DNA from: Blastocystis sp. Blastoise
Lineage: Eukaryota > Protista > Bigyra: Opalinata
Direction of reading: 5' to 3'
Assembly: GCA_039096225.1 (NCBI GenBank)
Contig: JBBPEB010000034.1
Coordinates: forward strand, 1,054,001-1,118,000
DNA length: 64,000 bases
Below are positions 28,733-48,525 of this stretch, in pieces. The notes beneath the pieces were generated by a model. That model was not told where the DNA came from. It made no database searches and was given only the letters and a program-made list of their open reading frames with translations. The position numbers and the translations under genes were made by a program. Numbering within the stretch: the stretch's first letter is position 1; the number at the start of each line of letters is the position of its first letter.

Positions 28733-29063
28733 TTCAATGACATGATATAAACTGTTCTAATTGATTTACTTGTTTAATTTAATCGAATAAAAAATGTATA
28801 TGATATTTGTGAATTTCCTTTATTTTCTCTGCTATTACATACACTAGAGGATACGTTCAAACTAGATTCTTTACATATTTATCACATTTTCAATTACCAC
28901 ATAATCTAATTGTTGCTTTTCGAATAAAAAGAATCATTTGTTTTGTATCTGTATGTATTTTTAAACACAACAAGTTATTTCTTTTATTTTTAATTCAACA
29001 AGATCAAAAGATTGAAAAGAAAACAAAAAGACAGAAATGAAATTCTGATAACCCACCAAATTC

Positions 29064-29074
29064 TTCCGCCAAAA
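29064..29074 (-). promoter_or_regulatory. E2F-like site TTTTGGCGGAA, probably the displaced Cdc6 promoter element
   Basis: Matches TTTSSCGS, with a degenerate second copy at 29052-29060. Lies ~36 bp from the Cdc6 ATG once the hAT element is removed in silico. Confidence 0.55.
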
Positions 29075-29089
29075 TTGTTCTTTTTATTG

Positions 29090-29097
29090 TTTGCGTA
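29090..29097. repeat. Left 8-bp target-site duplication TTTGCGTA
   Basis: Identical to 45965-45972 and abuts the left TIR. Confidence 0.88.
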
Positions 29098-30017
29098 CAG
29101 CGACTTCCAAAAGGCCCTTTTTTTTTGCGGCGTCGCAATTGTCAGCAAAATTTGTGACACAAAAATGAAAAATGATAAATAACTTTTTTGTTTTTAATTT
29201 TAAAAATATAAAAAAAATATTTTCAAACTCAGCTCATCAAGACACGTCGATTTACACACTTTTCATGAAAAAAGGACCGGGTGACATAAAAAAGACAATT
29301 CATTCATTGACTATTATATTATGACGTGACAGTTTTTGACTAAAAACGTATTATTTTGATATATAATGTATGACTATTTGAAAATAAGTCAAATAAAATA
29401 TTTTTTGTGACACATGTTGTGACAGATACATGACTGAAAAGTATATAAGTCATCAAATAACAACAAGTATGATTCCTATGTTTGACTATTCGTGTTAAGT
29501 TGGGTGACAAATAAAAATATTTTGTGACAATAGTCAATTGTTTATATACTTTTTTTTAAGCTATTTCAAATAGTATTATTTATGTGTTATAATGAATAAT
29601 ATTGTCAATAAACTCTAAAATAATATTATAAAAAATAATAATGTAATTAAAAAGTTTTTGTTTTTGTTAAATATCACGAAGTAGTCTTGTAGGGACTCTA
29701 CAGATACACCCTGACTAGTAATAAAAAAAATAAACGAAAAGCATATTAAAATAATTATTTTCAAAAACCAAACAAAAAACAACAGTATGAACAAAAGTCA
29801 GATTTTTAAAAACAATACTTCAGACAAAATGTTTTTTAATAGCCTTTAAAAATGGTTTTAAAATGTATTTTACATGTAGAATAAGTCACACAACACATTT
29901 ATAATATTTATATTGTAAAATATATTATTTTTATGTTTAAAAAGGGAAAAATAAAAAAAGGTTAGTAGTCACTGGTTTTATAATTATTATATGACTTGAT
30001 GATAAATATTATATAAA

Positions 30018-44914: not shown

Positions 44915-45964
44915 ATTTAAATTCAAATCTTTCAGTCAAATACTAAAAATATTCTTAAAAATACATTTTTTATTCTTCAGTTTTTTTTGAGATATTCTAT
45001 TAAGATTATTAGTTTTAACGCGTCAGACAATACATTATTTACACAATTCTATTGTATCCCACTACTTTTAGCTTCTCAAAAATAACTCATTTTCTTTGAC
45101 TTTCTGATCTGTTTATATACTCGTCTAAAAACTACTGTTTTCAACTTCAAATGCTTTTCTATTACATAAAATTACTCTAATAGCAACTTTTAAAACGACT
45201 TTTATTTGATACTAAAAAATAACTGCTTAGTTTAAACTTCTGACAAAAGTTTTTGATGCGGAACCTTTAATTATACTAAAATATAATGTAAAAACTATTC
45301 TAAAATCTTTTTGTGCTTTGATATATAACAAAATATAAACAGACTCAGTTTTGGACAAGAAAATTATTCCCGTAAATACAAAAGAATCAAAACTCTGGTC
45401 TTTTATTCAGCCAAACAAATAGGCTCGGTTCATTCTTTCAGTGTAAAAAAATAATTTTTTGACTTTTTGACTTGGTTGTCGTTTTGACTCATAGATGTCA
45501 TTTTATTCACTTTTACACATATTTATGAATTTAAGAGGTCTTTCACTTTGAACAGAGCTATAAAAAATTCTAAAATATTGACCCCATTATTGTCAAAATG
45601 GCGACTTAGAATGAAACAGAAACGTTTTTGATATTGTATAACACTTTAGAATAATATAAAGATGTCAATTCATTGATAAAATATGCTTAATAGTTTTTTT
45701 GAGTCTAAATCATTAATCTACATAAAAGTTTCCTGAAATATTCTTCTTTTGTATTCAAGTCTTTTATTTATTGAATTATTATTGATTAAAAATGTTCTTA
45801 TGCAAAAATAAGCCATGAAAAAGCTTTAAATAGTCAAAAGTACCTATCAGTGAGAGAAATCACAATCTGGCTTCAGTTTATCGAATTCAGCCGAATTAAG
45901 CATGGCTGAAAAAAGTGTCACAAAAGTGTCGCCGCAAGTGTCACAGACACTCGGGAAGGCACTG

Positions 45965-45972
45965 TTTGCGTA
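45965..45972. repeat. Right 8-bp target-site duplication TTTGCGTA
   Basis: Immediately follows ..GGAAGGCACTG and is identical to 29090-29097. Confidence 0.88.
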
Positions 45973-45985
45973 ATATTCTTTTACA

Positions 45986-48525
45986 ATGCCATCTCCAAAA
46001 AAGCGAAAGCAAAGTGTTTCTGATGAAATACCACAATTAGAAGATGTTAAGCCAAAAACATTAAATAAAGAAGAAATTTTAAAACAATTTGATCAATCGA
46101 ATCATGAGTTTCCTATCCTATGTCGATCTAAAGAAATAGAAGAACTTCGAAATTTTTTTATGAATGCAATGACAAATTATCATGGAGATTCCATATATAT
46201 TAGTGGCACACCTGGTACTGGAAAGACTCTATGTCTTAATTCTATGTTAGATAAACTAGATGAAGAGTTAGATGATGCCAGTATACATACCAATATTATA
46301 TGGATTAATGCTATGGGAATATTAAAGCCACAAGTATGTCTATTTTTGAAAGAATTGTCGATCTTATGATTTCTATTTTTTAATAGGATATTTATTCTCA
46401 AATAGCAAATAAATTGAGTGATAAGAAAATTCAGAATGCTCGTGCTCAAGAATGGTTAGACGATTATTTTATTAATGAAGAAACGGTGAAAAACCGAAAA
46501 CGAAAACGTTACTCTGAATTTACGTATGTATTTTATATATAATTATTTTTTTTATATATATTATATATGTATATATAAAATTATATAAATAGGATACTAT
46601 GTATTGATGAAATAGATCGTTTATTAGCAATACAAAATAAAGAGTTTTTATATCATTTATTTGAACTTCCACATCTTCATAATTCCTACTTACTTCTTGT
46701 CGCAATATCCAATAGTATTGATTTAGTAGAAACACAATTACCTCTTCTTGGAACTTCTTTATGTATTTATATTTATTATTATTTACTATATATATATATG
46801 TTAGTTGTTATTTTATTATTCATATATATATATATTAAGTTTATGATTATATATTAATGCTATTTGTATTATTACATATCATATAATGATTTTATTCGTC
46901 TATATTCTATTTCTTCACTTTTTTTGCATTAATATGTTTCCTTGCAGTTATTCTTATTATATCTATGTTTTTGTATGCAAGTCATAATATTCTAAATATA
47001 TATTTATGAATTATAGATATAAAGCCCAAAACTATTGTGTTTGAATCCTATAAGAAACAAGATTTAATTAATATTGTCAATCAACGAGTCACACTTTGTG
47101 ATCCGTACATTCCTGAGGGATTCACACTTTTTAATACGCAAGCTATTGATATGTGCTGTCGAAAAGCTGTATTTTTTTTTAAATATGTTATTATTATTAT
47201 TTTATGTATTAATTTCTTATTTTAAAAGTGATTCTTTTTTATTGATCGTTTTTGCTAGAAATTTATTGTTTTTATTATTATATTATTATTATATTATTAT
47301 TATATTATTATTATATTATTATTATATTTATTATTATATTTATTATTATTATTATATAACTATATAGGAGCAGATGGGGGATGCTCGAAAGGTATTAGAT
47401 ATATGTAAACGAGCACTTGAAATCAATTTAACCAGAGATCCTCCTACTATGGGTATATATATATATATATATTATTATTATTATTATTATTATTATTATT
47501 ATTATTATTATTATTATTATTATTATTATTATTATTATTATTATTATTATTATTATTATTATTATTATTATTATTATTATTATTATTATTATTATTATTA
47601 TTATCATATACTCATTAATTAATTAATTCTTTTTATATGATTTCTTATTCTAGTAATTATATATATAATCATATAACTACATAATTATTATATATATAGT
47701 GAGTTTAGGAGATATATCGAAAGTTCTTCGTTCCTTCTTTGGTTCCTCTACAAATGATTTTCTTAATGAACTACCTATTCGTGTTCAAGTATATATATAT
47801 ATTTAAACATTATTATATATACAATATTATATAAACAATAATATATAAACAATGATATATTCAATATTATATAAACAATAATATATAAACAAGAATATAT
47901 ACAGTATTATATAAACAATAATATATACAATAATATATTCAATATTATATAAACAAGAATATATACAATATTATATAAACAATAATATATACAATAATAT
48001 ACTCTATATTATATAAATAATATTATATAAATAATAATATTATATATAGGAGTTATTAGGAGTTTTATGTGGTATGTCTCAGTCAATAGAATCCATAGTA
48101 ACTCCAAAAATGAGAGCTAAACAGAAGCTGACAATAACCGCGGTTAAGAAGGTATATACAAAAGTAATGAACGCAGTAGTCACGATTACAAGGACGTCTC
48201 TCTCTGATTTTAATATGCTTATTGAACAGTTAATTAATAATAGTATTATTAAGAAATCAGGTTCTAAACTTATTAAAGATACGGATGTTGTATGTATATG
48301 CTATATATATGTATTATATATATATATATATTATATATATATATATATACCAATATATATTACTATCATAATATATGTATATAATAATAGTAGTATTAAA
48401 GAATATTTTTTATATGTATTTATATATAGCTTACTTTACAATTAACTACAAATGATATTATCGATTCGTTTACTTATAATCCACAATTACAATCTATATT
48501 ATCCAAAACAAAAACATTCTTCTAA
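45986..48525 (+). CDS. CDC6: Cdc6 (Cdc6/Orc1 family AAA+ replication licensing factor), multi-exon
   Basis: LCRSKEIEEL, Walker A SIYISGTPGTGKT, Walker B ILCIDEIDRL, AISNSIDL, FESYKKQDL, GDARKVLDICKRA. N-terminal SPKKRK. Stop 48523-48525. Confidence 0.92.
47806..48040. repeat. Degenerate intronic minisatellite (aatattatataaacaataatatatac-like) in Cdc6
   Basis: Visible tandem units in the intron ending at 48049. Confidence 0.7.

Follow-up and report, generated by a model that had tools for sequence, protein, structure and literature searches.

A hAT-like element upstream of the Cdc6 start codon in Blastocystis and the E2F/DP-like word that it displaces

The DNA-replication licensing gene Cdc6 of Blastocystis, a very AT-rich gut protist, is separated from its native upstream DNA by a DNA transposon of the hAT type. 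Gene and element lie in a 64,000-nucleotide window, which is the whole stretch of DNA analysed here (C26:1054001–1118000), from a eukaryotic genome assembly of 33.34 Mb in 34 contigs with ~20–25% G+C. Labels such as C1 or C16 for contigs and L007 for loci are local names within this assembly, and feature coordinates are collected in Table 1. A sequence-only reading of the window had proposed that an insertion between 29052 and 45988 parts Cdc6 from an E2F-like promoter motif. That range runs from the motif to the ATG; the insertion within it is real, and the element proper is the shorter interval 29098–45964 (16,867 bp). The right target-site duplication is followed by 13 bases (45973–45985) and then by the Cdc6 ATG at 45986, which is the spacing originally claimed. 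The insertion cuts the Cdc6 coding sequence from all of its native upstream DNA, whatever the E2F-like word does.

The element ends are well defined. Five further full copies in the genome (8,269–8,465 bp) have identical termini, and each has its own perfect 8-bp duplication, so the boundaries first drawn from the window are proven independently of any promoter argument. The duplications are perfect and mutually different in all six copies, and that of the window copy is TTTGCGTA. The terminal inverted repeats CAGCGACTTCC and GGAAGGCACTG are identical at 9 of 11 positions, and both ends share the subterminal motifs TTGCGGCG and GTGACAC. The termini read CAGCG...CACTG, the right end being CAGTG in reverse complement, and follow the YARNG pattern. 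These ends and the 8-bp duplications fit the hAT superfamily. Like Ac/Ds, hobo and Hermes, the element has an 8-bp duplication, short imperfect inverted repeats that start with CAGNG, short repeated subterminal motifs and a position beside the 5' end of a gene, and its longer relatives, judged by coordinates only, have an open reading frame (ORF) with the dimerisation domain between the same ends. It differs from them in that the window copy and its five 8.4-kb relatives have no recognisable transposase and carry a multi-exon passenger gene on the opposite strand, in that its putative autonomous relatives are unusually long (~19–24 kb), and in that the target duplications of the family depart from the nTnnnnAn preference. 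A transposase within the window copy was considered and rejected; Pfam searches found no transposase domain in the ORFs of this copy or of the five relatives. The hAT dimerisation domain PF05699 has 37 matches in the genome. At C15:688926–707904 and C28:220275–243914, identified by coordinates only, an ORF with PF05699 lies between matching ends in one orientation; the left arms of these relatives are 95–96% identical and their right termini 84–85% identical to those of the window element. A 178-bp segment with 90% identity to the left arm accompanies at least 17 copies of an ~873-aa hAT ORF, always at a distance of 12.98 kb (again by coordinates only). The five other full copies are 99.95–99.99% identical to one another and the window copy is 98.4% identical to them. 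This divergence, together with two nested insertions in the window copy, indicates that the insertion at Cdc6 is older than the current burst of the family. A second case of the family abutting a start codon occurs at L007 (C28:242114–245414), where a longer relative, 96% identical at its left end, terminates 10 bp before an ATG (position 1812); the ORF beside it has at least 496 aa and no Pfam match.

The gene to the right of the element is supported as Cdc6, not Orc1, by the sequence of its exons. Exon 1 matches solved Cdc6 chains at E = 6e-8 and Orc1 chains at 6e-6, and exon 3 matches Cdc6 at E = 1e-6 and Orc1 at 6e-3. The gene model was searched exon by exon; exon 4 had no match to solved chains and exons 2 and 7 had no Pfam match. 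Walker A (GTPGTGKT) lies in exon 1, Walker B (CIDEID) and ISNSIDL in exon 3, and sensor-2 (GDARK) in exon 5. The protein begins with MPSPKKRK, which includes an SPKK-type site, and Walker A begins after 70 residues. ORC1 is a separate gene (C16:~312–316 kb) with BAH, AAA+ and Cdc6_C domains, and the Cdc6 gene has no BAH domain. The C-terminal winged-helix domain PF09079 was matched only in the ORC1 gene when exons were searched singly; the C-terminal exons of Cdc6 may be too diverged or too short for detection in this way. All introns are GT-AG, the 14 splice sites are intact, the exon phases close by arithmetic and the frame is unbroken, which upholds the earlier view that the ORF is intact. 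No start before 45986 is possible, since an in-frame TAA at 45971–45973 precedes it; the empty-site sequence has this stop too. In the assembly, the Cdc6 DNA and the exon-1 protein each match only this locus, so that Cdc6 is single-copy there. The sequence-only reading had allowed for another copy; no paralogue exists in the assembly, but the other allele, in a diploid, could play that part. No record holds the exact exon-1 ORF, and a word-based protein search, in a length window that left out full-length proteins, found nothing. Long (TAT)n and (ATT)n microsatellites occur within introns, including Cdc6 intron 5 (47452–47600), and a 3,229-codon open frame elsewhere in the window (54287–63976, minus strand) has very long poly-asparagine runs; both are low-complexity expansions typical of this genome.

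The native upstream DNA of Cdc6 is short. A same-strand gene ends upstream with its stop codon at 28730–28732, so the native intergenic region was only 378 bp; in tortoise isolates the median intergenic length is 645–719 bp (PMC12129017). The 365 bp left of the element have no second match in the genome. No ORF of at least 60 aa begins there reading away from the element, in keeping with the earlier statement that no gene start adjoins the motif. The insertion point, at −13 to −21 relative to the ATG, most likely lies inside the 5' leader or at the start site. Removal of the element from transcripts as an intron is unlikely: the left junction offers only GTACAG and the right junction a poor AAG/G, no AG occurs between element and ATG, and the insert is 16.9 kb long compared with introns of 50–260 bp in the genome. 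An empty-site allele or a second copy within the assembly was also considered and rejected, with no other match for either flank and only a self-match for the exon-1 protein. A 36-nt junction pattern for the empty site had 0 matches in public metagenomes, which is a weak test.

Table 1. Features of the Cdc6 locus and of the element inserted in it (window positions).
Feature	Position	Strand	Remarks
Upstream neighbour gene	26412–28732	+	at least 3 exons; stop TAA 28730–28732; no Pfam match
Native Cdc6 upstream remnant	28733–29097	+	365 bp; 378 bp when the 13 bp beyond the element are added
CCCACCAAA, degenerate second copy of the word	29052–29060	+	TTTGGTGG on minus strand; 5 bp from the core TTTGGCGG
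E2F/DP-like word TTCCGCCAAAA	29064–29074	+	TTTTGGCGGAA on minus strand
Left target-site duplication	29090–29097		TTTGCGTA
hAT-like DNA transposon, non-autonomous	29098–45964	+	16,867 bp
Element backbone	29098–30354, 36085–40222, 43081–45964
Left terminal inverted repeat	29098–29108	+	CAGCGACTTCC
Nested insertion 1	30355–36084	+	tandem head-to-tail dimer of 2.87-kb Helitron-like unit
Backbone with exon-like ORFs of passenger gene	36085–40222	−
Nested insertion 2	40223–43080	−	single inverted copy of 2.87-kb unit
Further passenger-gene exons	43136–44253	−
Upstream ORF	45902–45973	+	23 codons; stop TAA 45971–45973 spans the duplication end
Right terminal inverted repeat	45954–45964	+	GGAAGGCACTG
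Right target-site duplication	45965–45972		TTTGCGTA
Cdc6 gene	45986–48525	+	8 exons, 438 codons
Cdc6 exons 1–4	45986–46333, 46387–46523, 46593–46762, 47017–47168	+
Cdc6 exons 5–8	47368–47452, 47700–47788, 48050–48289, 48430–48525	+

The displaced flank contains one candidate regulatory word. The rare GC-rich motif noticed earlier just left of the element (TTCCGCCAAAA, accompanied by CCCACCAAA) is confirmed, and no E2F-like, CCAAT-like or GC-rich word other than TTCCGCCAAAA lies within the 365 bp of native flank. Read on the minus strand, TTCCGCCAAAA includes TTTGGCGG (29066–29073), which fits TTTSSCGC/S; its last base is G and not the classical C, as in the commonest word of this kind in the genome. 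With the element and one duplication removed, the word stands 23 + 13 = 36 bases from the ATG, which agrees with the distance first proposed. Strict TTTSSCGS words occur twice in the 64-kb window, one of them at Cdc6, and were absent from 109 kb of unrelated loci. The probability of finding a strict word in a 365-bp stretch by chance is ~2% (1969 per 33.3 Mb) and is lower in AT-rich non-coding DNA. In the upstream neighbour gene, a TTTGGCGC word lies within a coding exon at 28153.

E2F and DP proteins are encoded in the genome. The E2F_TDP domain PF02319 has matches at 7 places on 5 contigs, and the DP domain PF08781 at 2 of them. In the whole genome, TTTGGCGG is tenfold over-represented (648 occurrences, compared with 64 of its reversed control), the counts for TTTGGCGGGAA and its control are 135 and 1, and all TTTSSCGS words together occur 1969 times against 731, with TTTCCCGC and TTTGGCGG dominating. 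Part of this excess is carried by a repeat family with at least 5 copies (L054 and L056–L059 at C16:1381534, C16:1914865, C21:431103, C21:663725 and C24:37323), since its members hold TTTTGGCGGAA together with the canonical TTTGGCGGGAA 2.6–2.8 kb away. Upstream of the PCNA ATG are two CCAAT boxes together with GCCGCCAAAT at −231 and TTTCGCGG at −140. In a FEN1-like gene (MGIKGLTKLL...), GCCGCCAAAT stands at −68, adjoined by TTTTGGTG; a CACCAAA word abuts this site too. At DP, GCCGCCAAAA lies ~370 bp before the first coding exon. All three genes (PCNA, the FEN1-like gene and DP) thus have [G/T]CCGCCAAA ahead of them, and it runs in the sense orientation, as the word does at Cdc6. Two or more matches to the oriented word among 13 other replication genes would arise by chance with p ~0.001 (background ~1e-5 per base, ~0.004 per 400 bp), and with p ~0.04 if any strict word is counted. 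The sequence-only reading had suggested checking MCM, PCNA and ribonucleotide reductase (RNR) genes for upstream enrichment. PCNA has the word and four MCM genes do not; among the other candidate test promoters, the class I RNR small subunit (PF00268) and the GINS Sld5 family (PF05916) have no match in the genome. The missing PF00268 match would fit an anaerobe with another RNR class. A proteasome control set of 4 genes on C1–C4, placed by coordinates only, had none of the listed words within 2 kb. Two CDC45 genes (C5:~324–326 kb and C13:~371–373 kb) have near-identical N-terminal exons, and in both a GCCCGCC word stands 143 bp before the start of the Pfam CDC45 match; the pair suggests a recent segmental duplication.

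The interior of the element records later transposition. The window copy is double-sized because three 2.87-kb Helitron-like units are nested in it, two as a dimer in the first nested insertion (boundaries accurate to ~15 bp) and one in the second. The second nested insertion and the second tandem copy are 100% identical across 1,827 nt, which suggests that the 2.87-kb unit was active very recently. Compared with the empty sites in other copies, the unit entered between A and T without a target duplication, and its 3' end has a GC-rich hairpin, CAAGCGTAGGCTGGCGTAGCCAGTCGTGAAACGCTTG. The A/T target, the hairpin and the head-to-tail dimer resemble a Helitron. A passenger gene, seen as exon-like ORFs, lies on the minus strand of the backbone. 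Its 154-aa ORF at 43139–43600 (minus strand) has at least 15 genome copies with 92–97% identity and no Pfam domain; copies lie at C30:22228, C14:75539, C16:2108888, C31:1327901, C13:1253747, C26:34423, C8:2334506 and C26:1240328, several of them within ~110 kb of a contig end. This ORF may stem from a subtelomeric gene family, one member of which was captured by the transposon.

Taken as a whole, the account that we favor, tentatively and at somewhat less than even confidence, is that a hAT element sits in the leader or core promoter of Cdc6, that an E2F/DP word has been displaced, and that Cdc6 is now run from the right arm of the element. The insertion itself is shown: a non-autonomous hAT element entered the 5' leader or core promoter of a single-copy gene at a point 13–21 bp before the ATG, and a Helitron-like element later invaded it on two occasions. 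All 365 bp of native upstream DNA were thereby moved 16.9 kb from the coding sequence, and with them TTCCGCCAAAA, natively at −36 in sense orientation and seemingly of the same word class as the PCNA, FEN1-like and DP sites. TTCCGCCAAAA was most likely part of the Cdc6 promoter. A still-intact reading frame beside an insertion of such age suggests that the insertion is tolerated. By the route that we prefer, Cdc6 on this haplotype would be transcribed from a start site in the AT-rich right arm (44254–45964, 25% GC). The same arm is where the promoter of the passenger gene, which reads inward, should lie, and that promoter could fire both ways. Cdc6 would then no longer be under the displaced word. 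Known insertions in 5' leaders that re-wire host genes or are spliced from them (maize Ds and Mu, Drosophila P-element) likewise lodge an element between promoter and ATG while the gene is otherwise intact, and the result can be a hypomorphic or null allele or transcription that runs outward from the end of the element. The present case differs in that Cdc6 is presumably an essential, single-copy replication factor and in that the element is 16.9 kb long. Several features of the right arm count against a start site there. Neither an E2F-like nor a CCAAT word occurs in it, and four ATGs stand ahead of the Cdc6 start, at 45792, 45800, 45815 and 45902. A start site in the last ~80 bp would bypass these ATGs, and the 23-codon upstream ORF matters only for transcripts that start left of 45902. 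The stronger form of the proposal, in which the insertion is homozygous and Cdc6 is transcribed from a right-arm start, uncoupled from the E2F/DP word that still marks PCNA, the FEN1-like gene and DP, is rather unlikely. Insertions next to start codons may also be common and tolerated in this genome.

An insertion in heterozygous state, the other allele being intact, is nearly as likely as a right-arm start, and it is a serious contender although we hold it somewhat short of probable. The assembly would then show the occupied haplotype only, and the other allele, with its native promoter, would supply Cdc6; the occupied allele would have little or no expression and persist, sheltered, in a mostly clonal lineage. 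All published isolates have diploid k-mer spectra in a study that includes poly(A) RNA-seq (PMC12129017). Either flank is single-copy, which indicates that the assembly is collapsed at this locus. Parting an essential gene from its entire promoter is normally strongly selected against, and a silent allele masked by an empty one would explain everything without a new promoter. The diploid spectra and this simpler account both weigh against a right-arm promoter. Against heterozygosity, the insertion is old enough for 1.6% divergence from its relatives and two nested insertions, yet the 438-codon frame and all 14 splice sites are intact, although the decay expected in that time is small. The metagenome scan, a weak test as noted, also yielded no empty-site sequence.

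The E2F-like word could be a chance GC-rich word or the site of another factor, in which case the promoter was displaced without any E2F logic; this is possible if doubtful. The motif was picked after the fact. The 9-mer variant found at Cdc6, TTTGGCGGA, is near background (36 occurrences against 17 for its control): the ninth base at Cdc6 is the disfavoured A, which comes after just 36 of the 648 TTTGGCGG words, and 5 of the 8 exact 11-mers fall in the repeat family described above. The upstream regions of most replication genes examined have no such word, namely those of four MCM genes with a placed ATG, two CDC45 genes and one EXO1-like gene. Such words also arise in exons. The only one at ORC1 is exonic, two MCM genes have theirs in a conserved exon that encodes xPAGxxPR with the rare codons CCC GCG GGA, and an MCM8/9-like gene has several E2F-like words of which the inspected ones are exonic. 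No match to the Rb pocket (RB_A) was found in a search that had no positive control. All of these observations weaken an E2F interpretation. MCM promoters as E2F targets were rejected; the four placed starts have no upstream word, and the two TCCCGCGGGA-type palindromes examined in detail lie in the conserved exon that encodes xPAGxxPR. This promoter reading covered four MCM genes, the starts of the other three not being placed. Palindromes such as TTCCCGCGGGAA and TCCCCGCGGGAT occur inside MCM and ORC1 coding exons (L045 ~5218, L047 ~4818, L051 3925–6200, L052 7126), and exonic E2F-like words use codons that are rare for a 20%-GC genome (CCC GCG GGA, CCC CGC CAA). The low probability of a strict word in so short and AT-rich a flank argues against chance, as does the recurrence of the same core in the same orientation at PCNA, the FEN1-like gene and DP. 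CDC6 is also a classic E2F target in animals and plants. The locus resembles E2F/DP promoters of those groups in that the core TTTGGCGG is near the Cdc6 start with a degenerate second copy 5 bp away, in that E2F and DP proteins are encoded, and in that the same word is upstream of PCNA and the FEN1-like gene. It differs from them in the disfavoured ninth base, in the MCM promoters that lack the word, in the purely exonic word of ORC1 and the many other exonic words, and in the undetected Rb pocket. The E2F reading of the sequence-only analysis thus survives in part, with E2F/DP encoded and TTTGGCGG in tenfold excess, and is weak for the 9-mer TTTGGCGGA. An E2F-type reading of the Cdc6 word is plausible but unproven, and on balance we lean towards it.

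Two further explanations carry little weight. It is very improbable that Cdc6 is dispensable, or its role covered by ORC1, so that promoter loss is harmless: a separate ORC1 with BAH, AAA+ and Cdc6_C domains exists and Blastocystis is among the parasites listed as having lost ORC subunits (PMC7058166), but the Cdc6 frame, catalytic motifs and N-terminal SPKK-type site are all intact and distinct ORC1 and Cdc6 genes are both kept. A mis-join of the element into the locus by the assembly is hardly credible; the interior has large, perfectly identical inverted and tandem repeats that are hard to assemble, but a perfect 8-bp duplication of a unique, GC-containing target flanks the exact termini of the family, and the junctions of the nested units are clean when compared with empty sites in other copies.

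Two phenomena known from elsewhere, insertion of a hAT element into a 5' leader and the presence of an E2F-type word before replication genes, have a fresh case in this locus; neither has been described before in this organism. A literature search found no paper linking E2F to Blastocystis gene regulation. To our knowledge, the promoters and start sites of Blastocystis are essentially uncharacterised. If the insertion is heterozygous, the occupied copy would be an ordinary sheltered null allele, useful chiefly for marking clonality and the recent activity of hAT and Helitron-like elements. The common CCGCCAAA word at PCNA, the FEN1-like gene, DP and formerly Cdc6 would be a first hint of E2F/DP-type cell-cycle control in this stramenopile. 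The locus is of real interest only with a homozygous insertion. In that event a replication gene that is essential would be running on a transposon-derived promoter, which would make the locus a clean natural case of regulatory re-wiring by promoter swap and could provide a handle on the minimal promoter in Blastocystis.

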